A stretch of DNA of 64,000 bases from Piromyces finnis finn (GCA_002104945.1 MCFH01000015.1:744001-808000), one strand, 5' to 3'; positions 8,126 to 37,632 are shown, counted from the stretch's first letter. Translations and numbers: made by a program. The notes: generated by a model from the letters alone, not told the origin.

Positions 8126-9185
8126 AATGGGTCAACATTCTCAAATTTAATACCGAGATTCTTAGCAATATCCGGGTTAATAAAATTTAACTCAGAACCA
8201 GAATCAATCAACACCTTGATTTTCGCTTCAGGAACCTCATTAGTACTTAAATAAAAGTCAATGAAATTCAAATCATCTTTTTTATTCATTACTCCTACTT
8301 TGTAAATTTTTGATTCAACAATTTTAGGGGTTTTTCCTTAATAATTCTAAAAACTTTCTTGGGTTTTACTCTGTTTGGACAATTAAATTTAAAATGCCCT
8401 GGATTTTTACACAAAAAGCAAACCCCCTTTCTCCTTTCTTCCTCAAATGTTCTCGGGCTTTCATCATAATTATTACTAGTTCCTTGAATGTTTACGAAAC
8501 GTTTACGCTTCTTTTCAGCACTAATTCTAAAAACATCAACATCCATAGGATCATTAGCCTTTCTATTATTAAAATAAAATTCACTCAAAGAATTCCTTTT
8601 CATCATATCTTCAACTAATATGGTTGAAGATATTAACTGTTCCAAAGATGATGGGTTTGTTTCAACAAACGCCAATTTTTCTCTGAGTAATGGATTTAAA
8701 CCTTTCAGAAACATATAGATCTTAGCACTTTCGTTGAAGCTAGAATTTTGGCTAACTCGTTGAAACTCGGTGATATAATCAACTACTTGACCAAGTTTTC
8801 TTTGTCTAATGTCATCGAGTCTACCGTTTGCAACAACGGTGTCATATCGATCACTACTGAAATTAGCCTTGAGTCGATCTATAAATTCATCATAACGGTT
8901 CAATACATTACTATTATTCCTCATAAGTGATGATGCCCACTCCAGGGGTCTAACAGAGAAGTAGGAAATAACGAAATCAACCCGGACGCGATCTGTATTG
9001 TACAGTGCCGGTCGAGTTCGAAATACCAATTCTACTCTAGTTAAAAACCCATCTAAATCTCTATGTCTACCAGTAAACAACGGGGTAGCATTAATAATGT
9101 TCCCTGGATTTACTGAAGAACCACCACCTCTTGCATCCATTCCTTCTAAATTTAAATTATCAAAAGTATTAATTAATTCCTCCAA
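8126..9185 (-). pseudogene. gag: gag plus protease of the family B host element, 1-bp frameshift near 8330
   Basis: CFLCKNPGHFKFNC knuckle; [12 protein letters not shown] protease; the copy at 45938-46065 is in frame across the same site. Confidence 0.88.
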
Positions 9186-12300: not shown

Positions 12301-13859
12301 ATGGTTAAGAAGAAAAATGGAAAATGGCGCATTTGCATTGATTTTAGAAAATTAAATAATGTAACTGTTAAAGATGCATACGCCCTACCTAAAATCAAAG
12401 AAATTTTTGATTCACTTAAAGACTCAAAAATCTTTTCAACAATTGATTTATTTAGTGGATATCATCAAATTCCTATGTTCAAAGAAGATATAAAACTTCT
12501 TTTACCACGAAATTTGGTAACTATTATTTTAAAGTTATGCCTTTTGGATTAACTAATGCTTCTGCCACTTTTCAGCGCGAAATGAATCGTATCTTTTTCG
12601 ATTTAATTAATGAATGTGTTCAAATATATTTAGATGATATTATTATTTATTCTCCTAGTTTTGAAGATCATATTAATGACTTAAGAAAAGTTTTTACTAT
12701 TTTACGTAATAACAAATTAAAGTTAAATATTGAGAAATGTTCTTTTTGTCAACTTGAAATAGAGGCTTTAGGTCATCGGGTTACTATTGATGGTTTACTT
12801 CCTTTGGAAAAGAAAGTCGCATCTATTAAAGAAATGAACCCACCACGAGATATCTCTGAACTACGTTCATTTTTAGGTATGACTAGTTATTACAGAAATT
12901 TTATTGAAAATTATTCTGCTATTGCAGCTCCTCTTTGCAAATTATTAAAGAAGAAAATTAAATATGAATGGACAGAAATTCAAGAACAAAGTTTCAGAAA
13001 TTTGATATATTGCCTAGTTAATGCACCAACTCTTTGTTTTCCTAAATTTGATGTTCCTTTTATAATTAGATCTGATGCTTGTGGATATGGAATTGGTGGT
13101 GTTTTACTACAGTTATATGATGACAATATTGAACACCCAGTTTATTTTGTTAGTAGAAGTATTAAGAAATCGGAAGAAAATTATACCACTACTGAATTAG
13201 AAGGTACTGCTGCTTATTATTGTCTTTTACAATTTGAACCATATATTCTAGGGAATCCATTTCAAACTATTCTTTATACTGACCATGAACCTTTAGTTCC
13301 CATCATTAAGAAAGGAGAACCGAATACGAAAAAACATCAACGCTGGTGTGATAAATTTAGTCAATTAAAAGTTAATATTATTTATCAACCAAGAAAAGCT
13401 AATAAAATTGCTGATGCTTTATCCAGAATAACTTTGAAAGAGAATTTAATTGTTAACACTACTATTTCTGATGGTAATGACAATAATAATAAAGATGAGA
13501 ATAATAGTAATATTAATAAGTTTAATGCTAATAATTTGGATAATTTGGAAATTAATAATAATAATATTAATAATAATAATAATAACAGTAATTATAATAT
13601 CAACAATATCGATATTTCCAACAAAACCAATAGTTCCAATTTTACCAAGGAGGAGAACGAAAAATATGTTCGAACTATTGACAATAAATTATACTTCAAA
13701 GATAATAATAATTTTAGGGAGATTATTGATGATCCGTACACTAAAATTAAAATAATTGCAAAAGAGCATAGAATTGGACATGAAGGAGTACAGAAAACTT
13801 ATGAAAGAATCAAAATCAAATTTTATTGGAAAAATTTAATCATTGATGTAAAAAAATAA
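12301..13859 (+). pseudogene. pol: Ty3/gypsy pol fragment (RT, RNase H, start of integrase), frameshifted and truncated
   Basis: KKNGKWRICIDFRKLN, YLDD, RSDACGYGIGGVLLQ, ADALSR, HRIGHEG; frameshift near 12495; stop at 13859. Confidence 0.92.
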
Positions 13860-15759
13860 TTAATAATTAGAAAGAAGAGTTTTAATAAGACAATATTATA
13901 AGTGAAATTATTAATAAGAGAGAAGTTAATAATAATAATAAAATATTTTTCACCTAATATAATAAATTATAAATAAACTAATATTAAATTACTACAACAT
14001 AAAAGAAACATATATCAATAAGAAATAACATTTATTTATGTACAATAATTTCTCGTGATAATCATAATTTAAATATACGCCACGACTATAACTTTTTATG
14101 TAAATTTAAGATTTTTGTCGTAAATCAATTTATGGATTTTATGTAATTATTATAAATTTACCAATTTATAATAATTAAGGTTTATAATTTATATTTTATA
14201 TCAGTAACAAGGAACAATAGATGACTTATTATTTATGCAAGTTATACGATAAAATAAAAGTACAAAAGTGTAGGGACAAATAAATAATTGAAATACAATT
14301 AAATTTTAATAGTAAATAATATTAGAAATAAAAAATATTAAAAAAAATTAATAATTCATAGTATTATTATTTTATTTTTCAAAATTTGGAAATAAACTAT
14401 ATAAATAATCACTTATTAAACATAATAAACTTATCATTTAAAAGTAAATGAAGATTATAATAAAAATGATGGGGTTTTAAAGAATTTGGCTTTTTTTTTA
14501 TTTTTAATATTAATTTTATTTAAATATTTTTTTATATATACAATTATATAATGCTTTATTATTAGTAGTAGATAAAGTGTAATTATTAAAAAATTTATTT
14601 AATACTTTTGATTTTAATTTGAATAAATTGTAAAAATAGCATTAAAAATTTTAAAATTCAATTATTTCTCTTTCTCTTTATAAGATAGATTAAAATGAGT
14701 AAATCAATAATATTTGAATTTGAATTTTTTATATAAACAGTTAATCTAATTGAAGTAAAAAAAAAAAAAAATTGTTCACTCTATGTAAACAAAAAATTTT
14801 AAAAATAAGCCCTCGCTATTTCAGTTTGAGCTTCTCATTCAACCATAAATCATTCCGATCAATGGTTATAATTTTTTTCAAATTCTATGAAAAAAATTTT
14901 AATAAACGTATTCTTAGAATTATTGGTCTAAGAAATGTAAGATGAAAGTCTCACTGTTTCAGTGATAACTTTATATTAAGGAAGATATAATTTCTATATA
15001 TGTACCATTAATTTTTCAGCTTTATGAAAAATTAAATATTTTTTTTAGATCAACGGCTTATCCTTCGATGTAAAATTTTATCAATTTATTATTTTAAAAT
15101 TAAATTTTATAAACAACTTTAATAATTTTCATTTACTCTCTAAGAATAAATATTAATTATAATTATAGTAATAAATATTTAAATATTTATTATTTTTTAA
15201 TAAATAAATAAAATAAATAAATAAATAAACAAATAAATGACTAAATAAATAAATAAATCATGAATTAATAAAAATATCTGGTTGTTAATACCACTATTCT
15301 TTTTTTATAAATCATATGTTTATATATTAATATCTAAAAAAAAATAAAAATATATGATTCATCCATATATTGTAGAATATCCTATTAAATTTTAATAGTA
15401 TTACTAAAATAAATATTTTTTTTTGTTAAATCATATAACTTAAAATATAGATAGTTAATTATATATATATGTAATGTTTATTATTTATTAAAAAAAATAA
15501 TAATATTTTATAAATATAAAACCATTTTTATGTTTAAAAAAAAAAAAAAAACATAATCAAATAAAGTAATAAAGTAGAATATTTAATTTCGGTAGTAATA
15601 ATATTCTATAAATTTTAATTGATAAAACCATTTAACATTTTAATATTTCTAATATTATCGTAAAATATTTAACATAAATATTAGAAAAGGATGAAATGAT
15701 GAAATAGAATATTATATTTCAATTAATGAAAATAGAGAATCAACTTTTCCAAAGTATGT

Positions 15760-18700
15760 TATTTCAAAAATTGGAAGGAAATATACATTATTATTATTAT
15801 AAGGGTTAGATCCAATGTTTTTAAATTTACTAAATTTCCTAGTTCTTTTGGTAGTTCTGTTAATTTATTAAAAGATAGACCTAATTCTGGTAAATTTTTT
15901 AAATTTTTTAAAATTTTTATTTCTTTTAGTAATTCATAAAGTAAAATATCATTAGGATGTGAAAGTACCAACTTTTGTAAATTCTTTGCATTTAACATTA
16001 TTTGAAACAATTTTGAAATTTCTATACCAATATTATCAATTTTCAAACTCTTTAATTTTGGTGCTAATTTTTTAATATTTATTGTTTGAAGATTCAATAA
16101 ACCCAATTCTCCATCTATACGAAGTTCTTGAGACAATGCACTTTGATCAGCATCTTTTTTCTTATTTTCATTTATAACGATAATCTTCCATATTTTATTT
16201 AAATTAATAATATTTTTAATCAATTCATAATTTGATAATGGATAATTTAGGTTTGAAATAGTGATAAGATTTAAAATGGTATTCATCTTTAAATTGCAAT
16301 TAAAGGTTTCATCTTCATTATAAATAGGTTCTAATTTTTTTGTTTTTAATATGGATGTTGTTTCCTTTAAAATATTAATAATCAAATTATTATCCACAAT
16401 CACTTCTTCTATTAATGGTAAAGTCCATAATGTGTTTGGAAAAGTTTGTGTTGGATTATTATGAAAATCTAATTTTCTTAAATTTTTTAATTTTGAAATT
16501 AGTGGATGAATTTCCGTTGATTATTACTTAAATCAAGAATCTTCAAATTTTTCACAGCTTCAAAATCTTCATTAATAATATCATATGGAAATTGTTTAAT
16601 ATTTTTATTATTTACAAACAACGATTCACAGCATTCTGAATTTTTATAATAATATTTGATAGAAATAAAAGGTTGATAATCCAATTTAATTTTTTTTAAA
16701 TTTATTAAATTTCCTATTTCTTTTGGTAATTTTGTTATTTGATTATAACTTAGCTTCAATATTTTTAAATTTATTAAATTTAATATTTCATTTGGAAATT
16801 CTGCTATATTTCCAGATAGATCTAATTCTTGTAAATTTATTAAATTTCCTATTTCTTTTGGTAATTCTCTTAAATTATTATTAAATATTTCAAATAATTA
16901 ACTTATATATTTTATATTAAAAATAAATAATTCTTGCAAGTTTTTAAATTTCTTTTTATTTTTATTTTTTTTAATTCTATTATTTTATTATTAGATAAAT
17001 CCAATATTTTTAAATTACCAAATTTACTATCTCTTTCTTTAATTTTGTTAATCCATTACGACTTAGAAATAATTTTTGTAAATTTAATAAATTAAATATT
17101 TCTTTTGATAATTCTTTTAATTCATTTTCATTTAAATTCAATTCATGTAAATTTATAAAATTTTCAATTTCTTTTGGAATTCTGTTAATTCATTTTCATT
17201 TAGATCCAATTCTGGTAAATTTATTAAATTTCCTAATTTTTTTTTTGGTAATTCTGTTATTTAGTTCCAAGATAGATCTAATTTTTGTAAATTTATTAAA
17301 TTTTCAATTTCTTTTGGTAATTCTTTTAAACTATTACGAGATAGATCAAATTGTTGTAAATTTTTTTAAATATCCCATTTCTTTTGGTAATTCTGTTAAT
17401 TCATTTTCATTTAGATCCAATTCTTGTAAATTTTTTAAATTTCTCATTTCTTTTGGTAATTCTGTTAATTCATTTTCATTTAGATCCAATTCTTGTAAAT
17501 TTTTTAAATTTCCTATTTCTTTTGGTAATTCTTTTAAACTATTACAAGATAGATACAATTTTTGTAAATTTATTAAATTTCCTATTTCTTTTGGTAATTC
17601 TGTTATTTCATTATCCCATAATAACAATATTTTTAAATTTATTAAATTTCCTATTTCTTTTGGTAATTCTTTTAAACTATTTTCAGATAGATCCAGTTCT
17701 TGTAAATTTATTAAATTTCCTATTTCTTTTGGTAATTCTTTTAAACTATTTTCAGATAGATTCAATTTTTGTAAATTTTTTAAATTTAATATTTCTTTTG
17801 GAAATTCTGTTATTTGATTATTTGAAAGATGTAATATTGGTAAATTTATTAAATTTCCTATTTCTTTTGGTAATTCTGTTAATTTATTTTTATTTAGAAT
17901 CAACTTTTGTAAATTTATTAAATTTCCTATTTCTTTTGGTAATTCTGTTAATTTATTTTTATATAGATACAATTTTTGTAAATTTATTAAATTTCCTATT
18001 TCTTTTGGTAATTCTGTTATTTGATTATTATCAAGATCTAAATTTTGTAAATTTATTAAATTTAATATTTCTTTTGGTAATTCTTTTAAACTATTACGAG
18101 ATAGATCCAATTCTTGTAAATTTTTTAAATTTTTTAAAATTTTTATTTCTTTTAGTAATTCATAAAGTAAAATATCATTAGGATGTGAAAGTACCAAAAT
18201 TTGTAAATTCTTTGCATTTGACATTATTTGAAACAATTTTGAAATTTCTATACCAATATTATCAATTTTCAAACTCTTTAATTTTGGTGCTAATTTTTTA
18301 ATACTTATTGTTTGAAGATTCAATAAATCCAATTCTCCATCTATACGAAGTTCTTGAGACAATGCACTTTGATCAGCATCTTTTTTCGTATTTTCATTTA
18401 TAATGATAATCTTCCATATTTTATTTAAATTAATAATATTTTTAATCAATTCATTATTACTTAATGGATAATTTTGTTTGGAAAGAGTGATAAGATTTAA
18501 AATGGTATGTATCTCTAAATCGCTTATTTTTGAATTTTTAGAATAAGTTTCATTTTCAATAAAATAGGGTTGTTGTAATTCTATTGTTTTTAAAATGAAT
18601 GTTGTTTCCCTTAAAATATTAAGAATTAAACTATTATCCACAATCACTTCTTCTAATAATGGTAAGGTCCATAATGTTTCTGGTAAAGTTTGTAATGGAT

Positions 18701-21012
18701 TATTATGAAAATCTAATTTTCTTAAATTTTTTAATTTTGAAATTAGTGGAGGAATTTCCGTTAATTGATTATTACTTAAATCAAGAATTTTCAAATTTTC
18801 CACAGCTTCAAAATCTTCATTAATAATATCATATGGAAATTGTTTAATATTTTTATTATTTAATAATAAAGCTTCACAGCATTCTGAATTTTCATAATAA
18901 TATTTGATAGAAATAGAATGTTGATAATCTAATTCAATTTCTTTTAAATTTATTAAATTTCCTATTTCTTTTGGTAATTCAGTTAATTCATTATCATTTA
19001 GAATCAATTCTTGTAAATTTATTAAATTTCCTATTTCTTTTGGTAATTCTGTTATTTTATTCCAAAATAGATGTAATTTTTGTAAATTTATTAAATTTCC
19101 TATTTCTTTTGGCAATTTTGTTATTTGATTCCTCCATAAAATTAAATTTTGTAAATTTATTAAATTTCCTACTTCTTTTGGTAATTCTTTTAAACTATTT
19201 TCAGATAGATTCAATTCTTGTAAATTTATTAAATTTAATATTTCTTTTGATAATTCTGTTATTTGATTATCTGAAAGATCTAAATTTTGTAAATTTATTA
19301 AATTTAATATTTCTTTTGATAATTCTGTTATTTGATTATCTGAAAGATGTAATTTTTGTAAATTTATTAAATTTCCTATTTCTTTTGGTAATTCTTTTAA
19401 ACTATTTTCAGATAGATTCAATTCTTGTAAATTTATTAAATTTCCTATTTCTTTTGGTAATTCTTTTAACTTATTTTTATTTAGAATCAATTCTTGTAAA
19501 TTTATTAAATTTCCTATTTCTTTTGGTAATTCTTTTAAACTATTTTCAGATAGATTCAATTCTTGTAAATTTATTAAATTTCCTATTTCTTTTGGTAATT
19601 CTGTTATTTGATTATTTGAAAGATCTAAATTTTGTAAATTTATTAAATTTCCTATTTCTTTTGGTAATTCTGTTATTTGATTATTTGAAAGATGTAATTT
19701 TTGTAAATTTATTAAATTTCCTATTTCTTTTGGTAATTCTTTTAAACTATTTTCAGATAGATTCAATTCTTGTAAATTTATTAAATTTCCTATTTCTTTT
19801 GGTAATTCTTTTAATTTATTTTTATTTAGAATCAATTCTTGTAAATTTATTAAATTTTCTATTTCTTTTGGTAATTCTGTTATTTTATTCCAAAATAGAT
19901 TCAATTCTTGTAAATTTATTAAATTTTCTATTTCTTTTGGTAATTCTGTTATTTGATTACTCCATAAATTCAAATTTTGTAAATTTATTAAATTTCCTAT
20001 TTCTTTTGGTAATTCTGTTATTTGATTACTCCATAAATTCAAATTTTGTAAATTTATTAAATTTCCTATTTCTTTTGGTAATTCTGTTATTCTATTCCAA
20101 AATAGATCCAGTTCTTGTAAATTTATTAAATTTAATATTTCTTTTGGTAATTCTGTTATTTGATTATTTGAAAGATGTAATTTTTGTAAATTTATTAAAT
20201 TTCCTATTTCTTTTGGTAATTTTATTATTTGATTATAACTTAGCTTCAATTCTTGTAAATTTATTAAATTTCCTATTTCTTTTGGTAATTCTGTTATTTG
20301 ATTATTTGAAAGATGTAATTTTTGTAAATTTATTAAATTTCCTATTTCTTTTGGTAATTTTATTATTTGATTATAACCTAGCTTCAATTCTTGTAAATTT
20401 ATTAATTTTCCTATTTCTTTTGGTAATTTTATTATTTGATTATAACCTAGCTTCAATTCTTGTAAATTTATTAATTTTCCTATTTCTTTTGGTAATTCTC
20501 TTAATTTATTATTATTTAGAATCAATTCTTGTAAATTTGTTAATTTTCCTATTTCTTTTAGCAATTCATCAAATATAATATCATTAAGATATGAAAGTTC
20601 TAATTTTCGTAAATTCCTTGCATTTGATATTAATTGAGATAGTTTTGAAATTTCTATATCAATTTTATCAATTTTCAAATTCTTTAATTTTGGTGCTAAT
20701 TCTTCAATATTTATTGTTTGAAGATCCGATACATTTAATTCTTTATCAATAAGAAGTTCTTGAGATATTGTGTTTTGATTATCATTATTGCTACCATCCT
20801 AATACATTGTATAAAAATATAATTTTTAATATATATTCAATTAATTAAGTAATAATATTATAAATAAAAAAGCAAAAAAGTAAAAAAAAAAATAAGTAAA
20901 ATCATTATATAAATAAAAATCTTTTAATAACTATTATTATTATATAAATAAAATTTATATAAAAGAAATAAATAATTGAATAAATAATAATATTTTTTTA
21001 TAAAATTACCAT
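15760..21012 (-). CDS. LRR-only protein, copy A (main ORF 17346-20798; 23 + 11 repeats of 23 aa); distal part pseudogenised
   Basis: [23 protein letters not shown] repeats; the open frame extends to an AG acceptor at 20799-20801; +1 A frameshift near 17361, then stops and indels through modules 2-3. Confidence 0.88.
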
Positions 21013-24000
21013 TTTATATTTAATAAATTTTTATAAAGGAAAAAAAGGAAAAATGACAGTGAAATGAATATTTAAATAGATACAATATATAATAAAATAA
21101 AATATGAGTTAAAAGTAATAATGAATATTATATATATCTTGTTAAAAATTGTAATATTTAAATATTATTTATATATATATATTTTTAAAAAAGAAATAAT
21201 CATTGAAGATATTTAATAAATACTTTTTTATCAAATTTATACTTTTTTTTTTAAACTTTACCACAAAATAAAAAAAAAATGTGGTAAAGTTAAAAATAAT
21301 TAATTAATAAAAATATGTTTGATTTATTTAAAAATAAAATACTTCAAATATTCTCTTTCTTTTTTCAAATAAAACTATTTCAATCGTTTATTTATTATTA
21401 ATTATTAATAATTATTTATTTAATAGTTATTATTTTAAATTATTTTCTGTCTTTTTGAAATAACTTCATTTTCAACTCTTTAATAATAATTTATTATTGA
21501 TTTTTATTGTTTTTAATTTATTATTGTACAACATTTTGTATGGAATATATAGTATAGTGATAATATAAACATTTCATTAAATATTAATAAATATTGAAAA
21601 TTAGCATACAAAAATACAAAAATAAATTGAGAAAAGAAATTAACATATCGATAAGTGTAAAATGTAAAATCTATAAACAAATATATTATCATCTGCAAAG
21701 AAAATAAATTATGAAATTATTATTATTATTATAATTATAATATATATAATATATATTATATATTACATTCATATTAATATTTTTTTTTTTTATTTTTAAT
21801 TTTATATTATTTAATTTTTTTATTATTATTATAAATGTAAAATAAATTCATCATCTTCTTTAGTATTTTCATTTATAATGATAATTTTCCATATTTTATT
21901 TATACTAATAATATTTTTAATTAATTCATAATTTGATAATAGATAATTTAGGTTTGAAATAGTGATAAGATTTAAAATGGTATTCACCTTTAAATTACAA
22001 TTAAAGGTTTCATCTTCATTATAAATAGGTTCTAATTTTTTTTGTTTTTAAAATGGATGTTGTTTCCCTTAAAATATTAAGAATTAAACTATTATCCACA
22101 ATCACTTCTTCTATTAATGGTAAAGTCCATAATGTGTTTGGAAAAGTTTGTGTTGGATTATTATGAAAATCTAATTTTCTTAAATTTTTTAATTTTTAAA
22201 TTAGTGGAGGAATTTCCGTTAATTGATTATTACTTAAATCAAGAATTTTCAAATTTTTCACAGCTTCAAAATCTTCATTAATGATATCATATGGAAATTG
22301 TTTAATATTTTTATTATTTACAAACAACGATTCACAGCATTCTGAATTTTTATAATAATATTTGATAGAAATAAAAGGTTGATAATCCAATTTAATTTTT
22401 TTTAAATTTATTAAATTTCCTATTTCTTTTGGTAATTTTGTTATTTGATTATAACTTAGCTTCAATATTTTTAAATTTATTAAATTTAATATTTCATTTG
22501 GAAATTCTGCTATATTTCCAGATAGATCCAATTCTTGTAAATTTATTAAATTTCCTATTTCTTTTGGTAATTCTCTTAAATTATTATTAAATATTTCAAA
22601 TAATTAACTTATATATTTTATATTAAAAATAAATAATTCTTGCAAGTTTTTAAATTTCTTTTTATTTTTATTTTTTTTAATTCTATTATTTTATTATTAG
22701 ATAAATCCAATATTTTTAAATTACCAAATTTACTATCTCTTTCTTTAATTTTGTTAATCCATTACGACTTAGAAATAATTTTTGTAAATTTAATAAATTA
22801 AATATTTCTTTTGATAATTCTTTTAATTCATTTTCATTTAAATTCAATTCATGTAAATTTATAAAATTTTCAATTTCTTTTGGAATTCTGTTAATTCATT
22901 TTCATTTAGATTCAATACTTGTAAATTTATTAAATTTCCTATTTTTTTTTTTGGTAATTCTGTTATTTAGTTCCAAGATAGATCTAATTTTTGTAAATTT
23001 ATTAAATTTTCAATTTCTTTTGGTAATTCTTTTAAACTATTACGAGATAGATCAAATTGTTGTAAATTTTTTTAAATATCCCATTTCTTTTGGTAATTTT
23101 GTTAATTCATTTTCATTTAGATCCAATTCTTGTAAATTTTTTAAATTTCTCATTTCTTTTGGTAATTCTTTTAATTTATTTTTATCTAGAATCAAATCTT
23201 TTAAATTTATTAAATTTCCTATTTCTTTTGGTAATTCTTTTAAACTATTTTCAGATAGATCCAGTTCTTGTAAATTTATTAAATTTCCTATTTCTTTTGG
23301 TAATTCTTTTAAACTATTTTCAGATAGATTCAATTTTTGTAAATTTATTAAATTTAATATTTCTTTTGGAAATTCTGTTATTTGATTATTTGAAAGATGT
23401 AATATTGGTAAATTTATTAAATTTCCTATTTCTTTTGGTAATTCTGTTAATTTATTTTTATTTAGAATCAACTTTTGTAAATTTATTAAATTTCCTATTT
23501 CTTTTGGTAATTCTGTTAATTTATTTTTATATAGATACAATTTTTGTAAATTTATTAAATTTCCTATTTCTTTTGGTAATTCTGTTATTTGATTATTATC
23601 AAGATCTAAATTTTGTAAATTTATTAAATTTAATATTTCTTTTGGTAATTCTTTTAAACTATTACGAGATAGATCCAATTCTTGTAAATTTTTTAAATTT
23701 TTTAAAATTTTTATTTCTTTTAGTAATTCATAAAGTAAAATATCATTAGGATGTGAAAGTACCAAAATTTGTAAATTCTTTGCATTTGACATTATTTGAA
23801 ACAATTTTGAAATTTCTATACCAATATTATCAATTTTCAAACTCTTTAATTTTGGTGCTAATTTTTTAATACTTATTGTTTGAAGATTCAATAAATCCAA
23901 TTCTCCATCTATACGAAGTTCTTGAGACAATGCACTTTGATCAGCATCTTTTTCGTATTTTCATTTATAATGATAATCTTCCATATTTTATTTAAATTAA

Positions 24001-27000
24001 TAATATTTTTAATCAATTCATTATTACTTAATGGATAATTTTGTTTGGAAAGAGTGATAAGATTTAAAATGGTATGTATCTCTAAATCGCTTATTTTTGA
24101 ATTTTTAGAATAAGTTTCATTTTCAATAAAATAGGGTTGTTGTAATTCTATTGTTTTTAAAATGAATGTTTTTTCCCTTAAAATATTAAGAATTAAACTA
24201 TTATCCACAATCACTTCTTCTAATAATGGTAAGGTCCATAATATTTCTGGTAAAGTTTGTAATGGATTATTATGAAAATCTAATTTTCTTAAATTTTTTA
24301 ATTTTGAAATTAATGGAGGAATTTCCGTTAATTGATTATTACTTAAATCAAGAATTTTCAAATTTTCCACAGCTTCAAAATCTTCATTAATAATATCATA
24401 TGGAAATTGTTTAATATTTTTATTATTTAATAATAAAGCTTCACAGCATTCTGAATTTTCATAATAATATTTGATAGAAATAGAATGTTGATAATCTAAT
24501 TCAATTTCTTTTAAATTTATTAAATTTCCTATTTCTTTTGGTAATTCTGTTATTTTATTCCAAAATAGATGTAATTTTTGTAAATTTATTAAATTTCCTA
24601 TTTCTTTTGGCAATTTTGTTATTTGATTCCTCCATAAAATTAAATTTTGTAAATTTATTAAATTTCCTACTTCTTTTGGTAATTCTTTTAAACTATTTTC
24701 AGATAGATTCAATTCTTGTAAATTTATTAAATTTAATATTTCTTTTGATAATTCTGTTATTTGATTATCTGAAAGATCTAAATTTTGTAAATTTATTAAA
24801 TTTAATATTTCTTTTGATAATTCTGTTATTTGATTATCTGAAAGATGTAATTTTTGTAAATTTATTAAATTTCCTATTTCTTTTGGTAATTCTTTTAAAC
24901 TATTTTCAGATAGATTCAATTCTTGTAAATTTATTAAATTTCCTATTTCTTTTGGTAATTCTTTTAATTTATTTTTATTTAGAATCAATTCTTGTAAATT
25001 TATTAAATTTCCTATTTCTTTTGGTAATTCTTTTAAACTATTTTCAGATAGATTCAATTCTTGTAAATTTATTAAATTTCCTATTTCTTTTGGTAATTCT
25101 GTTATTTGATTATTTGAAAGATCTAAATTTTGTAAATTTATTAAATTTCCTATTTCTTTTGGTAATTCTTTTAAACTATTTTCAGATAGATTCAATTCTT
25201 GTAAATTTATTAAATTTTCTATTTCTTTTGGTAATTCTTTTAAACTATTTTCAGATAGATTCAATTCTTGTAAATTTATTAAATTTTCTATTTCTTTTGG
25301 TAATTCTGTTATTTGATTACTCCATAAATTCAAATTTTGTAAATTTATTAAATTTCCTATTTCTTTTGGTAATTCTGTTATTTGATTACTCCATAAATTC
25401 AAATTTTGTAAATTTATTAAATTTCCTATTTCTTTTGGTAATTCTGTTATTCTATTCCAAAATAGATCCAGTTCTTGTAAATTTATTAAATTTAATATTT
25501 CTTTTGGTAATTCTGTTATTTGATTATTTGAAAGATGTAATTTTTGTAAATTTATTAAATTTCCTATTTCTTTTGGTAATTCTTTTAAATTATTACAATA
25601 TAGATTCAATTCTTGTAAATTTATTAAATTTCCTATTTCTTTTGGTAATTTTGTTATTTGATTCCTCCATAAAATTAAATTTTGTAAATTTATTAAATTT
25701 CCTATTTCTTTTGGTAATTCTGTTATTTGATTCCTCCATAAAATTAAATTTTGTAAATTTATTAATTTTCCTATTTCTTTTGGTAATTTTATTATTTGAT
25801 TATAACTTAGCTTCAATTCTTGTAAATTTATTAATTTTCCTATTTCTTTTGGTAATTTTGTTATTTGATTATAACCTAGCTTCAATTCTTGTAAATTTAT
25901 TAATTTTCCTATTTCTTTTGGTAATTCTCTTAATTTATTATTATTTAGAATCAATTCTTGTAAATTTTTTAAATTTTTTAAAATTTTTATTTCTTTTAGT
26001 AATTCATCAAATATAATATCATTAAGATATGAAAGTTCTAATTTTCGTAAATTCCTTGCATTTGATATTAATTGAGATAGTTTTGAAATTTCTATATCAA
26101 TTTTATCAATTTTCAAATTCTTTAATTTTGGTGCTAATTCTTCAATATTTATTGTTTGAAGATCCGATACATTTAATTCTTTATCAATAAGAAGTTCTTG
26201 AGATATTGTGTTTTGATTATCATTATTGCTACCATCCTAATACATTGTATAAAAATATAATTTTTAATATATATTCAATTAATTAAGTAATAATATTATA
26301 AATAAAAAAGCAAAAAAGTAAAAAAAAAAAAAATAAGTAAAATCATTATATAAATAAAAATCTTTTAATAACTAATATTATTATATAAATAAAATTTATA
26401 TAAAAGAAATAAATAATTGAATAAATAATAATATTTTTTTATAAAATTACCATTTTATATTTAATAAATTTTTATAAAGGAAAAAAAGGAAAAATGACAG
26501 TGAAATGAATATTTAAATAGATACAATATATAATAAAATAAAATATGAGTAAAAAGTAATAATGAATATTATATATATCTTGTTAAAAATTGTAATATTT
26601 AAATATTATTTATATATATATATATTTTTAAAAAAGAAATAATCATTGAAGATATTTAATAAATACTTTTTTATCAAATTTATACTTTTTTTTTTAAACT
26701 TTACCACAAAATAAAAAAAAAATGTGGTAAAGTTAAAAATAATTAATTAATAAAAATATGTTTGATTTATTTAAAAATAAAATACTTCAAATATTCTCTT
26801 TCTTTTTTCAAATAAAACTATTTCAATCGTTTATTTATTATTAATTATTAATAATTATTTATTTAATATTTATTATTTTAAATTATTTTCTGTCTTTTTG
26901 AAATAACTTCATTTTCAACTCTTTAATAATAATTTATTATTGATTTTTATTGTTTTTAATTTATTATTGTACAACATTTTGTATGGAATATATAGTATAG

Positions 27001-28900
27001 TGATAATATAAACATTTCATTATATATTAATAAATATTGAAATTTGGATTAAAAATACAAAAATAAATTGAAAAAAAAATTAACATATCGATAAGTGTAA
27101 AATGTAAAATCTATAAACAAATATATTATCATCTGCAAAGAAAATAAATTATGAAATTATTATTATTATTATAATTATAATATATATATAATATATATAT
27201 TATATATTACATTCATATTAATACTTTTTTATATTTTTAATTTTACAATTTTACTATTTAATTTTTTTATTATTATTATAAATGTAAAATAAATTCATCA
27301 TCTTCTTTAGTATTTTCATTTATAATGATAATTTTCCATATTTTATTTATACTAATAATATTTTTAATTAATTCATAATTTGATAATAGATAATTTAGGT
27401 TTGAAATAGTGATAAGATTTAAAATGGTATTCACCTTTAAATTACAATTAAAGGTTTCATCTTCATTATAAATAGGTTCTAATTTTTTTTGTTTTTAAAA
27501 TGGATGTTGTTTCCCTTAAAATATTAAGAATTAAACTATTATCCACAATCACTTCTTCTAATAATGGTAAGGTCCATAATGTTTCTGGTAAAGTTTGTAA
27601 TGGATTATTATGAAAATCTAATTTTCTTAAATTTTTTAATTTTGAAATTAGTGGAGGAATTTCCGTTAATTGATTATTACTTAAATCAAGAATTTTCAAA
27701 TTTTCCACAGCTTCAAAATCTTCATTAATAATATCATATGGAAATTGTTTAATATTTTTATTATTTAATAATAAAGCTTCACAGCATTCTGAATTTTCAT
27801 AATAATATTTGATAGAAATAGAATGTTGATAATCTAATTCAATTTCTTTTAAATTTATTAAATTTCCTATTTCTTTTGGTAATTCAGTTAATTCATTATC
27901 ATTTAGAATCAATTCTTGTAAATTTATTAAATTTCCTATTTCTTTTGGTAATTCTGTTATTTTATTCCAAAATAGATGTAATTTTTGTAAATTTATTAAA
28001 TTTCCTATTTCTTTTGGCAATTTTGTTATTTGATTCCTCCATAAAATTAAATTTTGTAAATTTATTAAATTTCCTACTTCTTTTGGTAATTCTTTTAAAC
28101 TATTTTCAGATAGATTCAATTCTTGTAAATTTATTAAATTTAATATTTCTTTTGGAAATTCTGTTATTTCAGTATCCAATAATAACAATATTTTTAAATT
28201 TATTAATTTTTTAATATCTTTTGGTAATTCTGTTATTTGATTATTTGAAAGATATAAATTTTGTAAATTTATTAAATTTCCTATTTCTTTTGGTAATTCT
28301 TTTAAATTAATACGAGATAAATCCAGTTCTTGTAAATTTATTAAATTTCCTATTTCTTTTGGTAATTCTGTTATTTGATTACTCCATAAAATTAAATTTT
28401 GTAAATTTATTAAATTTCCTATTTCTTTTGGTAATTCTTTTAATTTATTTTTATTTAGATTCAATTCTTGTAAATTTATTAAATTTCCTATTTCTTTTGG
28501 TAATTTTGTTATTTGATTATAACCTAGCTTCAATTCTTGTAAATTTATTAATTTTCCTATTTCTTTTGGTAATTCTCTTAATTTATTATTATTTAGAATC
28601 AATTCTTGTAAATTTGTTAATTTTCCTATTTCTTTTAGTAATTCATCAAATATAATATCATAAAGATATGAAAGTTCTAATTTTCGTAAATTCCTTGCAT
28701 TTGATATTAATTGAGATAGTTTTGAAATTTCTATATCAATTTTATCAATTTTCAAATTCTTTAATTTTGGTGCTAATTCTTCAATATTTATTGTTTGAAG
28801 ATCCGATACATTTAATTCTTTATCAATAAGAAGTTCTTGAGATATTGTGTTTTGATTATCATTATTGCTACCATCCTAATACATTGTATAAAAATATAAT
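16200..28900. repeat. Tandem segmental duplication, unit about 5.4-5.7 kb, containing 69-bp LRR tandem arrays
   Basis: Intergenic 20800-21840 matches 26240-27290; coding 16200-20800 matches 21850-26240 apart from repeat number. Confidence 0.92.
21829..26453 (-). CDS. LRR-only protein, copy B (21 + 9 repeats), frameshift between modules near 23950, distal decay
   Basis: Near-identical flanks and non-repeat domains to copy A at an offset of about 5.4-5.7 kb; ORFs 23909-26116, 23052-23930 and 22196-22531. Confidence 0.85.
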
Positions 28901-29032
28901 TTTTAATATATATTCATTTAATTAAATAATAAATAAAATAATAAAGAATAGTTATACATAAATAAATCTTTATAAATTAAATAAATAAAAAATGGAAATA
29001 ATTAATTATAAATTTTTTTATAAAATTATCAT
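27276..29032 (-). CDS. LRR-only protein, copy C (single module, 11 repeats), frameshift near 27483
   Basis: ORF 27466-28755; same N-terminal domain and same 3' end ([13 protein letters not shown]) as copy B. Confidence 0.82.
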
Positions 29033-30579
29033 TTTTTATTGAATAGTTTTTATAAAAGAAAAACAACAATGAAATGATATTTGAATTTATACTAGAATAT
29101 AATAGGAATAAAAAGTAATAATGAATATTATATTTCTTATTAAAGATTGGATTATTTAAATATTATTTATTTATTTATTGAAATAATTATCTTTTTATTG
29201 AAATAAATTTTTCTTATTATCTTTTTTCTTACATATTTTATATAACAAATAAATAAAGGCATGCAAAGGATCTCAAGACTATTTTATATTAAAATTAATT
29301 TGTATATTGTTTTTTAAAATCGTATTATTTTTTAAATTGTAAAAATAGTTCATTTTAATTCTATAAAAAGTTAAAACTATTTTTAAGAAATATTATTTTT
29401 TATTTTATTACCTTTTATTTATTATAATTTTAAAATCTTGAAGGTATTATTTATATTATTCATATTATTTTTTTTTTCTTTTATAATTACTTGTCAGTCG
29501 TCAATATAAAAATTGTTTATAATTTCTAGAGTGTGTTGTTTGTCATGCTTCAACCTTTATTTTTTTTCATCCAAAATTAAAAGATATATTCTTAAAAAGA
29601 ATAAAATTTTTAATTTATCATAAAGTGGTCATGGTCACACAAATTTTAAAAAAATTAATTTTAAAATTAATTAAATATTATATCATATATTATTTTTGTA
29701 AACTAATATATGATTACAATATATTATGTTCATTTAAAATAAAATGAAAAAACTGTCAAAAAAAAAAAAGACAATTTTCATTAACATTAAAAAAAAATAA
29801 AGAAAGAAATGATTTATATATTGTTTATTATTCCAACTATTATTATTCTAACTATTATTATTGATGTTACAAATACTTTTTTTTCAATTAACAGAATAAA
29901 AATGATAATTTTATTCTGTAAAAAAATAATACTATATAATTCATTAAATATTTTTAATAAGAAAGAATAATTTTGGTTGATTCTTTTTAGCAATCCTTAG
30001 TTAAATTAATTGATTATTAGTTGATATCGTGAATTTAATATACTTAAATATTAAATTCACGATATAATACAAATACAAAAGTATAGGATTAACTATATAA
30101 TTCATTTATATCAAATTTAATAATATTTATATCAATCAATAATAATTATATAACTATTCAAATTATCTTTAAAAAAAAATTAAAGTATAAAATTTTTAAA
30201 AGGTTAAGTTATATATAAAAATGAAAATTATAATATTATCCATATGTACAATATATTAAATGTATCAAAAAAGTGATATTTAAAAAAAAGTATATTTAAT
30301 TTTTTATATTTAAATATACTAGTTTAAGAAAGAAAAAAAAAATACTATAAAAATTTCTATTCTATTTACCTATTTTTTTATTTTATACTATAAGCCCATA
30401 TATTTATATAAAAAAAAAAAAACTATCTTATTTATTTAATAAATATATACCATAAAATTTTCCCCTTTTTAATTAATTCAATAAAAATATATTATGAATT
30501 TTATAATTTTTTTTATGTGTTTATTATGAAATTATTGTTAATTAAAGGAAGTAAATGAATTAATAGAAAAAAAAGCAAT

Positions 30580-31985: not shown

Positions 31986-32639
31986 ATGAAATTCTTTGGA
32001 AAAACTTTATTAGTTTCTACCTTAATTGCTACAATTAGTGCTGCTGTAGTACCTATTAAAGATAGATCAACAGAATGTGCAGTTGCTTTAGAAAAATTTA
32101 AAAATTCTAGCCAAGGAAAAAGTTTTTTTAATTGTTGTTCCATGTTAGAAGAAGATGATAAACTCGGTTTCTGTTCTGACTCTAAATGTAAATATTTATC
32201 TTTACCAAAAGATGTCGAAGATTGTTTAACTAGTTCTGAAAAAAGAAAATTTAATATGTATGTAGAATTATTAACAAACGTATACGATGAAATGTGTTAT
32301 GAATTATTAAATTCTGAAAGCAAAATTAACTCAGCCAATAATAAAGATAGCAACAATTTTTCTAATAACAGTAATATCGACTCTGCTAATACTATTACTA
32401 CTACTAACATTGCTAGTAATGCTGATACAACCAATACTTTTAATACTTCTAATACAATCAATACTGCTAATACTTCTAATACTGCAAATACCGCCAATAC
32501 CGCTATTAATCCAGGAAATAGTACACTTGTTAATTCAGAAAGCAATAATAACAACTCCGAAGTTAAGTCTGCCGGTTCAAAATTATCATACTCCTTAGTT
32601 ACTGCTTTTGCCTTAGTGGCATTCCATTTCATTTTATAA
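31986..32639 (+). CDS. Secreted, probably GPI-anchored Cys-rich surface protein, 217 aa
   Basis: Signal peptide MKFFGKTLLVSTLIATISAA; 7-Cys domain; Asn/Thr/Ala linker; small residues (SAG) then a hydrophobic C-terminus. Confidence 0.8.
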   Translation: MKFFGKTLLVSTLIATISAAVVPIKDRSTECAVALEKFKNSSQGKSFFNCCSMLEEDDKLGFCSDSKCKYLSLPKDVEDCLTSSEKRKFNMYVELLTNVYDEMCYELLNSESKINSANNKDSNNFSNNSNIDSANTITTTNIASNADTTNTFNTSNTINTANTSNTANTANTAINPGNSTLVNSESNNNNSEVKSAGSKLSYSLVTAFALVAFHFIL

Positions 32640-32935
32640 TAAGTAAAATAAATATAATATAAAAGATATTCAATAATGAGCAAGTGAATAATCAAAACAT
32701 AATAGTTTTATAATTATTGAATATTTTATTGAAAGTAAAAAATTAAAACGAAAATATTAAAAAATAAAAGAAAAATAATTTTATAAGTAAAATAAATATA
32801 ATATAAAAGATATTCAATAATGAGCAAGTGAATAATCAAAACATAATAGTTTTATAATTATTGAATATTTTATTGAAAGTAAAAAATTAAAACGAAAATA
32901 TTAAAAAATAAAAGAAAAATAATTTTATAATAAGT
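32640..32935. repeat. Direct tandem duplication of about 145 bp in the 3' flank
   Basis: taagtaaaataaatataatataaaagatattcaataatgagcaagtg... occurs at about 32640 and 32785. Confidence 0.8.
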
Positions 32936-34440
32936 AAAATAAAAAAATATATAATATAAAAAAAGAATATAAAGTAAAAATACAAAGAAAAATATAAAAT
33001 AAATAATTAAATAAAAATAAATTGAAAAAATTTTTAAAGTAAGCTTATAAAAATAAAATTTTATTTTGAGCTATTCCTTTTTATTTTAATTTTATTATTA
33101 TAATTTATTTATGTGAAAGGTGTGGTTTTTTGATTATTTATAACTTTAATGAAATAAATCAAATTCTAATCAAAATCTAACAATAAAATTAATACTTTAG
33201 AAGAATTAATATGATAGAATGCTAAAATGAATAAAAATCCTTTTATTTTTAATGATAATAAATGTTTTTTAGAGTAAGAAGGAAATGTTTTCTTTTTTAA
33301 TTTTAATAAAAGGAAGTATCAAAAATAATGTATTAAAAAAATGACCAAAAGTTTTTTATAGTGTTTTCTTATTATTAAAACTATTAATTTCAAAAATAAT
33401 AACAATATTAATAATAATTATACAAAAGATATATTTTAATCTATATTATAAAACAAATTGTTATAGAGTACTTTAAAATAGTATCATTTAGCTATTGCTC
33501 TCTTTTTATTATCAAGACATTAATGTAAATGTATACATTTTATATTACATGATAGTTTTATTGATATTAATTTAATGGAATATTATTGGATAAAAAATAG
33601 TTTAATATACATTTTTATTCTAAAGAAATTTCGATTTAATGAATAAAGTTCTAGCCAAAAATCATCCTTTTATCAAATTCTAACAATCTTATCCAAGAAT
33701 TAAAAAATAAAGTAATTTAAAGAATTATAACATGAAAGAATCTATTCTGTTTTAAATATAATGTTATTCATTTTTTTTGTTAGAGTCATCTAGGTTAAAT
33801 CAAATACATTAAAATTTTATATTAATGCCTATCTAATACATATATTACATAGTATTATATAAATACATTATTATAATACGCCACATCGTGTGAATGTTAA
33901 TGACATTACCTATGATACGGGTTAATTTTATGTAGAAAGAATTAAACTTTAAATAATATATATTTTATTAATAATTTTATTTATAACGTTCCAATATTTC
34001 TATTTTGTCTAAATACTAAAACGTTCTGTCGTTGTCAAATATTAAAATTCTAACTAAAACAAGAAGCCCTTTTTAATAATATTTATTCTAGTCTATTTAT
34101 ACTAATGAGGCTTACTTAATAATTAATTGTTCAATTATAAGGCTGGAACTATATGGATCATTCATTTACATTATTCTTTTACATTACATAATATTACATT
34201 TGTCGTACATTTACATTATATTCTTATACATTGTAGAAATAATTAATATTATAATAAAACTATATAAATTTAATATTAGGAAAAATTACTAATATAATAA
34301 TATGTTCAAGTCACATATTATTTTTATATCACCTATTTTACTATAAATTCTTTGTTAACAAATTTCTGTACTGTCATAATTAAACTTTATTTCTAACATT
34401 TTTATTCATTGTCCACATTTTTAAGTAATGAATTTTTAAA

Positions 34441-34720: not shown

Positions 34721-34888
34721 ACTTTGATAATAATTATATAGATTAATAATAAATATATCATAAAATAATCATTTAAACAACTATTATTCATTCACTTTTT
34801 TATATTAAATAAATATGCTTGAAATAATATTGATTGATTGATTGGTTTAATTATGTTTCATTATATTTTGTTTAGTAAAATTTATTTA

Positions 34889-35070
34889 AAAGATTATGAT
34901 ATATTTATTTTTTTTTATAATGATAAAGTTTAAAAGATTATGATATATTTATTTTTTTTTATAATGATAAAGTTTAAAAGATTATGATATATTTATTTTT
35001 TTTTATAATGATAAAGTTTAAAAGACTATGATATATTTATTTATTTATAATAATTAAATTTATTTAAAAG
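34889..35070. repeat. Tandem repeat of about 41 bp, about 4 copies
   Basis: aaagattatgatatatttattttttttataatgataaagttta repeated. Confidence 0.7.
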
Positions 35071-37632
35071 ATTATAATATTTAATTAGGGATAAAGTTTA
35101 TTTAAAATAGTAATATATATTCTTTCACAAAGTAACAAAAAAATAAAACCTTAAAGAAAATAAAATTGCTACTAGTTTTCTAGTATAATAAAAATTAATA
35201 ATTGAAGATAATGATACATTATAGGGTTTACTTTCTCAAACCATTACCAAATATTATTATCATTATCTAATTGACGTCAACATTATTTAATCCAACGATG
35301 TTCATACTCTTTTTTTTATAGTGATATCCATACTAGGTACTCAAATATTTGATGATAGTATGGTGGGACTACTAAATATTGTTTTTATTATTTTTTTTTA
35401 TAATAACCTATGAAATTCTTATTACAAGAATTTCTGGTGAAGATAGGTGTTTGGAAAGGAAATGTTAATAATAATACATCAGGATAACTCAAGTTATAAA
35501 TATTATAATAAACTTATCAAAAATATAATACAAATACAAAAGTATAGGATTAATAAATTGAGCTACCCTGACCTAGTGGTAATAACGTTTCAATAATACC
35601 TTATCACCACAATAATAAATTAAGATTTAATTATAACTTTTTTTAATAATTTTAGTATTAATAAATTTTCATATTATTTGATATTAATTGTATAGATAAT
35701 AATATAAATTAAAAGATTAAGTATAAAAAAGAAATACTTTAGTAATAATATCATCAAAGACTTAATAAAGTATACTGTGTCAAGTTTTTTATAGAGATTT
35801 ATTAATTCCAGACAAAAAGTCATAAATCAACAAAAACATATATAATAAAATTGGAAGAAAAAATTGATGATTCATTATTTTTTTTTATATTTATTTTTTT
35901 TTTATTTTAGTTTTATATTTAAAAAACAGTTTTTTGGTATTTTTTTCTGTATATAATTATTTTTTATTGAAAAAAAAATAAATGATCTATTTTATTATAA
36001 TGTATTGTACAATCTACACAAATAAAACTACATAAAAAATAGATAATAGATCTCATGAATACACCCCATCCATAAATTAATAGGTATTAATATTTAGAGT
36101 ATTAAAAAAAATTTTTAAATTAGAAAATTTAATATTGACATTACCAAAAAGACTTTTTTTTTTTTTTACAATTATTAATATATAAGAGAATGTTTTATAA
36201 TATTTATTTATTTTTCGGATATTCTACGTTATTTTTATCAATATTATATAACTAAATTTCTAAATAATATAATAATACCTTTTTTTCGGTTTTTACTTCA
36301 GATTATATTCATGGATGATCATTTGCCAATAAATACAGTTTATGAATCATCATACATTAATCATAGCATAAAGTTTAATAAATAATAATTTTTAATAAAA
36401 TAATTAGAAACTTCTATATAAAAAAGGATAAAAATAATTTCATTTAAATTAATGCATAAAAAAATTATTTTTTAATTAATACATTAATAATTAATGGGTT
36501 TGTTCCCATATATATATATATATATTTTTTTTTTTGGCCTTTAAAATATTACTTTTTTGAGTATAAAATGTCATGGAATTGATGCTAATGTAATATTATT
36601 ATTTTGGCAAAGAGAAATAAATAATTCCTATAGTTTAATGTAAAATATAGTAAAATCATTTGAGATATTCTAATGTAAGTTATACTTGTAAAAGATATCA
36701 GAAATAGTAACATCAACTTTATTAATCTAATACAAATATAAATTTATATATATACTATTAAGAAATAATAATTATCAATATTCTTTTTTTTTTTAATCAA
36801 TATCTAATTATAAATATATAAATAAATTAAATAAAAAACAACTATAAAATCTTTTTTTTTTTTCATTAAACCCTGTGAGGTATCCAAAATATAATATAGA
36901 ATGAGTATCCATTCCAAAATAAGCATTAAATATTGAAATTACTCAAATATTTAAAAGATTTTCCAGTTTATCCGTAAAATGAGATTTTAATAAGGTAATA
37001 TAAACTCTTTGATATAAGCAAAAATAATATATGCAAAATATGTTAAATTTTAATTAGTTAAGTATAAATTATAAAACATTAGATTTAGTTATAGTATGCT
37101 AAAGTACATACATTACAATACATTACATTATGTTAACTACATTTTACTTATTAATAAAATTTATACTAAAATTTGAGATTTTCTAGCAATTATTATTATT
37201 ATTATTATTAAATAATCCTTCTGAAGTTCTTGTCAATTCATTCATATAATAAATATTAACCATATGGTAAATAATGTAATTATAATTAAAGTTGTTATAA
37301 TAACTTTAATAATAATAAAATATTTTTAATAATTGGTAAATAGAAAAAAAAATAATCAAAAACAAAAAGTACTTATAATTAAAGTTTCAATACAACTTTA
37401 ATAATAATAAAATGTTTTAATGATATAATTAAAGTTTCAATACAACTTTAATTATATCATTTAAAAGATAAATTATTCTCTGGAGTTATTCGATTAGGTA
37501 TGAAAATTTTATTTAATGCTAATACATAATTATTTTTTAAATTATATAAAAGAAGTACATATATGCATTGCACATATTGTATACTATAGTCAGTCACCTA
37601 ACAATATTAGTCTTTCAATTTTTTAATTAAAA

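Follow-up and report, generated by a model that had tools for sequence, protein, structure and literature searches.

What generates the differences among neighboring genes whose leucine-rich repeat (LRR) arrays vary in number and order while the sequence around them hardly changes? This question is raised by a locus of Piromyces finnis that lies at 15,759–29,178 of a 64,000-nucleotide stretch (GCA_002104945.1, MCFH01000015.1:744001-808000), the whole of which we call the window. The locus consists of three tandem copies (A, B, and C) of a unit of ∼5.5 kb, all on the minus strand. An earlier interpretation made without database searches (the sequence-only reading) took it for a combinatorial system in which LRR cassettes are shuffled to yield a receptor repertoire, in the manner of the variable lymphocyte receptors (VLRs).

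The pattern observed at this locus is real and well above chance. The explanation that we favor, at a probability of roughly 0.72, is that the locus is a young cluster of tandemly duplicated LRR-only genes, in part decaying, that ordinary unequal recombination has probably reshaped (concerted evolution). The differences seen are germline differences between paralogues and do not amount to evidence of a programmed or somatic diversity generator.

Results

Architecture of the locus

Each unit is built of modules, and each module consists of a head, an array of 69-nucleotide (nt) LRRs, and a tail. The head is a capping, LRR-like sequence. The array is made of 23-residue units whose variable half is patterned xLxLxxNxLxE, and the tail comprises three irregular LRRs that end in NPLQTLP and then a spacer ∼110 residues long. 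The G+C content is ∼18% across the locus. Tandem Repeats Finder identifies 69-nt arrays at 18932-20567 (23.7 copies, 86% matches), 24499-25976 (21.4 copies), 27839-28644 (11.7 copies), 16972-18132 (16.8 copies), and 22678-23700 (14.8 copies). A 36-nt linker pattern has 96 matches in the window, every one of them on the minus strand between 15854 and 28641, at a spacing that is mostly exactly 69 nt.

These results bear out two of the earlier claims. The linker is nearly invariant, its commonest type occurring in 35 of the 70 regular units that we extracted for unit statistics. The repeat numbers also agree with both Tandem Repeats Finder and linker spacing: module 1 holds 23 repeats in A, 21 in B, and 11 in C, and module 2 holds 11 in A versus 9 in B, provided that the head unit is counted in. 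A Pfam scan found only LRR families in the open reading frames (ORFs) of the locus (LRR_14, LRR_8, and LRR_4, with E values of 1e-97 to 1e-224), and no NACHT/NB-ARC or effector domain in these or in neighboring ORFs.

Order of units within the arrays

Each module 1 array can be written as a string in which the letter denotes the linker type and the number denotes the cassette that forms the variable half:

A1 = a0 a0 b1 b2 b1 c3 b4 b4 d5 d6 b7 b1 b8 b7 b9 b7 b10 e11 e7 f12 g13 b14
B1 = a15 a2 a16 b12 b17 b1 c3 b4 b4 d7 d7 b8 b7 b6 b7 b10 e11 e7 f12 g13
C1 = a15 b18 b19 b20 b21 h22 i7 f12 g13 b14

A1 and B1 are colinear over 12 units, and their differences are confined to three local blocks and the loss of b14. 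The stretches that they share in the same order are c3-b4-b4 and b8-b7-(b9/b6)-b7-b10-e11-e7-f12-g13. Thus, the claim that the middle cassettes are permuted was overstated. The reuse of a set of cassettes is seen in the data, since the 70 units comprise 42 different DNA sequences, with 14 types of linker and 34 of variable half, and the SENSLKE cassette is used 10 times. However, most of the reuse between A and B was inherited through segmental duplication rather than drawn independently from a pool. Modules 1 and 2 have no identical cassettes in common. Within an array, the reuse of cassettes 7, 1, and 4 resembles local duplication of two or three units at a time, in agreement with the 138- and 207-nt periods that Tandem Repeats Finder also reports.

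Recombination has acted inside the units as well as between them. Linker d is found with three cassettes (5, 6, and 7), and cassette 7 with four linkers (b, d, e, and i). Since d6, d7, b6, and b7 are all present, the four-gamete condition is violated, which indicates exchange between linker codon 6 and the variable half. Mosaicism among the aligned 69-bp units is therefore evident both in this violation and in the whole-unit insertions and deletions (indels). Taken together, the whole-unit indels, the recombination of linkers with cassettes, and the clean chimera found in copy C (see below) point to in-register unequal crossing-over and gene conversion as their probable explanation. The proposal that repeats are exchanged by way of the linker survives in this form, with breakpoints compatible with the invariant linker, but without a programmed combinatorial system. 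The pace of such exchange can be gauged from the colinear A/B units, which differ by one substitution in 828 nt, whereas at least four unit-level rearrangements separate the A and B arrays over the same period. Structural change has thus been faster than point mutation.

In a programmed, VLR-like system, the invariant linker would be the handle by which cassettes are assembled, through directed and possibly somatic copy choice, into a receptor repertoire for non-self sensing. The variable-half cassettes are indeed reused and reassorted with linker variants, their hypervariable positions fall on the β-strand face, and the decayed LRR units beside the genes could in principle be donors. Against this, the arrays are complete, uninterrupted ORFs with no noncoding gap inside, A and B are colinear at most units, and all 96 linker matches lie within colinear modules, leaving no separate cassette bank in the 64 kb. 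The proteins have no signal peptide and no Cys-rich cap, and their repeat class is the intracellular 23-residue type. A Pfam scan of the window ORFs, and of these only, found no deaminase domain, and of the three copies, B and C are broken. We therefore regard programmed assembly as hardly credible at this locus, and the VLR-like diversification proposed in the sequence-only reading was not borne out.

Variation within the repeat unit

Ordinary recombination of whole units leaves the question of where, inside each unit, the variation sits. Amino acid entropy is 0–0.5 bits at codons 1–12 (codon 6 excepted) and rises to 1.8–3.0 bits at codons 13, 15, 17, 18, and 20. Codons 1–12 are nearly invariant with synonymous sites included, and L14, L16, and N19 are retained but spelled with several synonymous codons; position 21 is I or L only. 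The mean pairwise identity of the units is 0.84–0.85 at the nucleotide level and 0.72–0.74 at the amino acid level, with far lower values in the variable half. In an AlphaFold2 model of copy C (mean predicted local distance difference test [pLDDT] score 79, and >90 in the array), every 23-residue unit has a 5-residue strand on codons 13–17 and a short (5-residue) helix on codons 3–7. Established LRR geometry, combined with this modeled strand, would put codons 13, 15, and 17 on the concave sheet and codons 18 and 20 in the loop around the Asn ladder. The model thus places the variable codons on the β-strand (concave) side, as the earlier claim of variation concentrated at concave-face residues had supposed.

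The two halves of the unit also differ at silent sites. The pairwise synonymous difference (pS) rises from 0.013 in the linker half to 0.29 in the variable half. Counting minimal mutation steps gives a linker synonymous rate ∼5x lower than that of the variable half (rough binomial p ∼0.02), and both methods together put synonymous change in the linker half ∼5–20x below that in the variable half. The ratio of nonsynonymous to synonymous change (ω) is 0.15–0.24 at scaffold codons. At the five exposed codons (13, 15, 17, 18, and 20) it reaches 2.2 in pairwise comparison and 1.5 when minimal steps are counted, values not significantly >1. The excess of amino acid change at exposed, presumably concave-face sites is therefore suggestive. 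The prediction of such an excess holds in direction, with ω of 1.5–2.2 at exposed codons versus 0.15–0.24 in the scaffold, but falls short of significance.

The three copies

The features of copy A are as follows.

17346..20798, minus strand: main exon, with N-terminal region, head1, 23 LRRs, tail1, head2, and 11 LRRs; stop at 17346
20799..21012, minus strand: putative one-codon first exon and intron; ATG at 21012-21010, then a GTAATT donor; 211-nt GT..AG intron at 21009-20799
20679..21847, minus strand: upstream flank, matching the copy B flank at 26117-27294
16147..17345, minus strand: decayed continuation, with four LRR units, a short module 3 (units 16864, 16798, and 16729), and a broken tail3
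15759..16146, minus strand: extension unique to copy A, with the end of tail3, head4, and two LRR units

Among the three copies, only A has an intact frame. Its module 1 units start from 20564 down to 19046, and tail1 extends from 18977 to ∼18160. The listed ORF is 17346-20678 (1110 aa), and the frame is open further upstream to an acceptor-like TAG/GAT (TATTAG/GAT) at 20799/20798. The main exon has no in-frame ATG before head2. A putative gene start is provided by the one-codon first exon followed by an intron of 211 nt in A and 214 nt in B, the ATG and donor being conserved in both copies. Beyond the stop, the decayed units are interrupted by an in-frame TAA and are spaced 70, 72, and 68 nt apart, which breaks the frame; copy B carries the same lesions. 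In the extension unique to copy A, likeness to the other modules stops at ∼15808. No anchor gene near copy A is on record.

In copy B, the two modules are separated by a frameshift.

23909..26453, minus strand: module 1, with ATG at 26453-26451, a putative 214-nt intron at 26450-26237, head1, 21 LRRs, and tail1
23052..23930, minus strand: module 2, with head2 and 9 LRRs; 292-aa ORF
21848..23051, minus strand: decayed part, with decayed LRR units, short module 3, and tail3; joins the copy A upstream flank at 21848
23124-23699: public gene call of 192 aa

The frame is broken near 23930, between tail1 and head2, where copy B has an A5 run and copy A has A6. Head1 of copy B carries a 9-nt head2-like insertion. 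A 9-nt AAATTTTTA-type micro-repeat occurs in head2 at 18109-18156, with near-identical copies at ∼15891-15919, 23685-23713, and 25961-25989. Public gene calls are on record for copies B and C; that for copy B spans exactly 23909-26453, starts at the ATG at 26453, and yields 661 aa.

Copy C is shorter and of mixed descent.

27295..28875, minus strand: copy C, with head1, 11 LRRs, and a chimeric tail; ORF 27466-28755 (429 aa), truncated after ...KTKK
28756..29178, minus strand: upstream flank, 194 bp at 97% to the A/B flank, then ∼76%

The first and the last three units of copy C are identical to module 1 units, and the middle ones are distinct or module 2-like. In its tail, 36 consecutive informative sites are in the tail1 state, after which the tail3 state is found exclusively. 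One crossover, with loss of all that lay between module 1 and tail3, would account for this clean switch. The start ATG is conserved in an otherwise diverged flank, but the donor GT reads AT. The description of the locus as three near-identical genes therefore needs qualification: the three tandem copies are there, but they are not equivalent, B being frameshifted and C being a truncated chimera with just 194 bp of matching flank.

Divergence between copies

The non-repeat parts of A and B are close to unchanged, as had been noted. The upstream flanks differ by 0.95% substitutions (11) and nine indels, tail1 differs by 0.4% substitutions, and head1 is identical. Colinear coding parts differ by 0.1–0.4% substitutions, and the decayed segment differs by 2.1% (26 substitutions). 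The junction of tail3 with the flank is alike at 21848 and 27295. This shared junction, together with the matching A/B flanks, indicates that the ∼5.5-kb unit spread by homologous unequal exchange. The same comparison bears on the origin of the modules. In B and C, tail3 (21848-21900 and 27295-27345) closes in an apparent ancestral C-terminus and stop, and the internal tail-to-head joints (e.g., 18230-18360) have, in place of this ancestral end, a sequence with homology to the N-terminal region that precedes head1. N-terminal-like sequence at these joints suggests that the multi-module ORFs are fusions of neighboring tandem genes that were once separate.

Such a history of damage and rearrangement could also describe a nonfunctional relic, a decaying pseudogene or minisatellite-like array in a transposon-rich region with frames open only through the youth of its repeats. 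The frameshift in B, the truncated chimera in C, the decayed units and broken tails after module 2 in A and B, the lack of an in-frame ATG in the main exon, and the retrotransposons flanking the locus on both sides are all consistent with it. Yet copy A keeps 1110 codons open despite a G+C content of ∼18%, whereas the four adjoining, unconstrained units already have three frame breaks and a stop. The low ω at scaffold codons (0.15–0.24), the colinear coding parts that diverge 3–10x less than flank or decayed DNA, the conserved island of ATG and donor at which the public gene call begins, and the probable RNA runs that contain part of the locus (see Discussion) likewise argue against a relic. 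A relic is, on balance, unlikely.

The same data bear on whether the assembly can be trusted, since copy number, array lengths, or both could have been misassembled from one or two real loci, with homopolymer sequencing errors posing as frameshifts. Repeat arrays with high internal conservation (HIC) are known to misassemble (PMC12222747). The frameshift in B is one base in an A run, many of the flank differences are homopolymer indels, and the best DNA run contains only 68% of sampled words. Against these points stand real substitutions between the copies (11 in the flank and 26 in the decayed part), distinct cassettes, consistent junctions, the clean chimera in copy C, and frame-breaking lesions common to A and B. 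We therefore consider an assembly artifact very unlikely as the source of the pattern, although such arrays, and gene models built on them, call for long-read checking.

Neighboring sequence

The LRR locus is flanked on either side by ORFs of Ty3/gypsy retrotransposons.

2307-6542, minus strand: apparently intact Ty3/gypsy gag-pol ORF of 1411 aa, with capsid, reverse transcriptase, RNase H, integrase, SH3, and chromodomain
8295-9185, 12537-13859, 43494-46688, and 51938-52876: Ty3/gypsy-related fragments among the Pfam-scanned window ORFs

Two further ORFs, at 31986-32639 and at 62462-62983 (minus strand), exactly match P. finnis proteins on MCFH01000015.1. The second of them groups with P. finnis proteins that include one listed in UniRef as “Capsid protein.” AT-rich tandem repeats occupy the interval between the LRR locus and the next retroelement, at 32631-32958 (144 nt, 2.3 copies, 94% matches) and at 34885-35080 (44 nt, 4.4 copies, 92%).

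Homologs

The same layout of head, array, and tail is found in one protein of another gut fungus, Piromyces sp. E2 (P0277, 708 aa), at 35% identity and with ordinary diverged repeats. The highest identities, 49–61%, are to bacterial and other LRR arrays (P0259 from Babeliales, P0260, P0302, and an ORF on contig L001), which combine an invariant LPKEIGNL segment with variable xLxLxxNx positions, as the P. finnis arrays do. The L001 protein (L001:22-696) is encoded on a metagenome contig whose other ORFs look bacterial by eye; the pattern thus occurs outside fungi too. High internal conservation is a feature of viral as well as bacterial LRR proteins. The nearest solved structures are LRRD1, SHOC2, and Leptospira LIC11098/12759/10831, the best PDB matches having E values of 1e-91 to 1e-105. 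The best full-length match, P0001, carries Roc/COR-A/COR-B.

Protein searches with the tail and with copy C returned only generic LRR/Roco proteins and the one Piromyces sp. E2 homolog. An exhaustive search of representatives with the tail found matches solely through its embedded LRRs (query residues ∼45–115), a metagenome scan with the tail gave one weak match on a bacterial-looking contig, and an Atlas feature search with the tail spacer gave LRR-like clusters only, at ∼0.9. The tail, copy C, and N-terminal queries returned no close relative, but the same searches missed the public calls for B and C, so these blanks are weak evidence as regards P. finnis paralogues. With the same caveat, the N-terminal 80 residues gave zero protein matches.

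A bacterial origin was considered because of the 49–61% identity to bacterial arrays. We reject it, since that identity is consensus-driven and a gut-fungal protein is the only one to share the head and tail. The comparisons of relatives gave no evidence of gene transfer.

Discussion

Our results favor a cluster of LRR-only genes reshaped by ordinary unequal recombination. Each module would then form one LRR solenoid, with a capping head, 23-residue repeats of the SHOC2/Leptospira type, and an irregular C-terminal tail. The 36-nt identical stretch common to successive units would permit misaligned homologous recombination at three scales, those of the unit (69 nt), the module (∼2.2 kb), and the gene unit (∼5.5 kb), probably through unequal sister-chromatid exchange, gene conversion, and replication slippage. 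Whole repeats would thereby be added, deleted, and recombined far faster than point mutation alters them. Selection would keep the scaffold (the Leu/Asn core and the LPKEIG helix) while tolerating, and perhaps favoring, change at the five β-strand/loop positions that form the predicted concave binding face, so that selection there may be relaxed or diversifying. We infer this mechanism from the arrangement of the repeats. The product of the locus is probably a cytosolic binding or scaffold protein; the predicted N-terminus (M-DGSNNDNQ...) is hydrophilic. The locus thus offers a worked example of multi-scale unequal recombination (unit, module, and gene) and of gene fusion in a very AT-rich genome.

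Several observations weigh against this explanation. At the exposed codons, 32.5 nonsynonymous versus 3.5 synonymous minimal steps were counted, with ∼4.9 synonymous steps expected under neutrality. This difference is not statistically secure, and the small number of synonymous steps is why ω there is not significantly >1. Four transcriptome-sized sequencing runs, which we guess to be RNA, contain 15–39% of the sampled copy A words; along with the public calls for B and C, they do no more than hint at transcription. Finally, the 661-aa public call for copy B falls short, by 345 nt or exactly five units, of what a reading with the ATG, a single intron, and the open frame would give.

A canonical in-array intron accounts poorly for this shortfall, as the sole GT..AG interval of 345 nt (26232-25888) would leave a 4-nt exon and remove head1. 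Collapsed transcript assembly, or homology-guided modeling over the repeat array, is a possible cause, or the shorter model may be real.

It is useful to contrast these arrays with known systems, beginning with the VLRs of lampreys and hagfish, which suggested the initial comparison. A VLR locus contains an incomplete germline gene and banks of partial cassettes, from which the mature gene is put together in somatic cells with the help of AID/APOBEC-like deaminases. The VLR proteins, secreted or anchored by glycosylphosphatidylinositol, carry LRRNT and LRRCT caps. The resemblance lies in LRR modules with concave-face diversity and in short sequences between cassettes that could guide exchange. 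Unlike the incomplete VLR gene with its noncoding stretch, the P. finnis arrays of 23, 21, and 11 units are continuous and in frame. Unlike the flanking VLR donor banks, the only noncoding units in the window are the decayed stretch common to A and B. A VLR has a signal peptide, Cys-rich LRRNT/LRRCT caps, and 24-residue LRRV modules, whereas P. finnis has 23-residue units and heads and tails without Cys-rich caps. The VLR analogy thus fails on every defining feature that can be judged from sequence.

The protein itself has closer likenesses. The 23-residue class of SHOC2/LRRD1 and of Leptospira/Babeliales has the same motif, LxxLxLxxNxLxxLPKEIGxLxxL, and the solenoid of strand and short helix that is predicted for P. 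finnis. The Leptospira and other bacterial arrays differ in that the P. finnis head and tail are not shared with them, their 49–61% identity reflecting the repeat consensus. Roco proteins have LRRs followed by a Roc GTPase and COR, and the proteins in the window have no Roc/COR. A further parallel comes from transcription activator-like (TAL) effectors, whose arrays are made of near-identical repeats, DNA-identical except at the specificity codons, and acquire new specificities through repeat recombination. The TAL fold differs, the ligand is DNA, and the origin is bacterial, so the likeness may extend to evolutionary mode only.

The other instructive comparison is with the HIC repeats of fungal NOD-like receptors (NLRs), where NOD is the nucleotide-binding oligomerization domain (NACHT/NB-ARC). 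In these WD40, ANK, and TPR repeats, concerted evolution keeps the repeats similar, surface codons are hypervariable, repeat number is polymorphic, and number and order shift by unequal crossing-over and exchange between paralogues (PMC4986451, PMC12222747). LRRs were not found among the repeat types in a survey of fungal NLRs (PMC4986451). Like the WD40 repeats of Podospora HNWD/het-e/het-d and the ANK and TPR repeats elsewhere, the P. finnis arrays show whole-unit indels, reassorted cassettes, and variable β-strand positions, together with variation in repeat number (23/21/11 and 11/9) and shuffling between paralogues. They differ in that the repeat is an LRR, with neither a NOD nor an N-terminal effector domain. 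HIC repeats within a gene are by definition more than ∼80–85% identical, and the P. finnis units, at 72–74% amino acid and 84–85% nucleotide identity, lie below or at these cut-offs. Whereas surface codons of HIC repeats are under diversifying selection, the exposed-site ω of 1.5–2.2 in P. finnis is not significantly >1.

By analogy, the arrays could play, with LRRs, the part that HIC sensor domains play in fungal NLRs: they would form a fast-diversifying, possibly mitotically unstable repertoire of binding proteins for partners or non-self, in an early-diverging and NOD-less setting, with the invariant 36-nt linker fixing the register in which units are exchanged. We consider this extension of the recombination model distinctly improbable. 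If it were true, the non-self targets could include bacteria, methanogens, viruses, and other fungal strains. Podospora-type fungi employ internally conserved repeats as fast-evolving recognition surfaces, and gut fungi would be a further case, here with LRRs, should the arrays turn out to differ among strains or within a culture.

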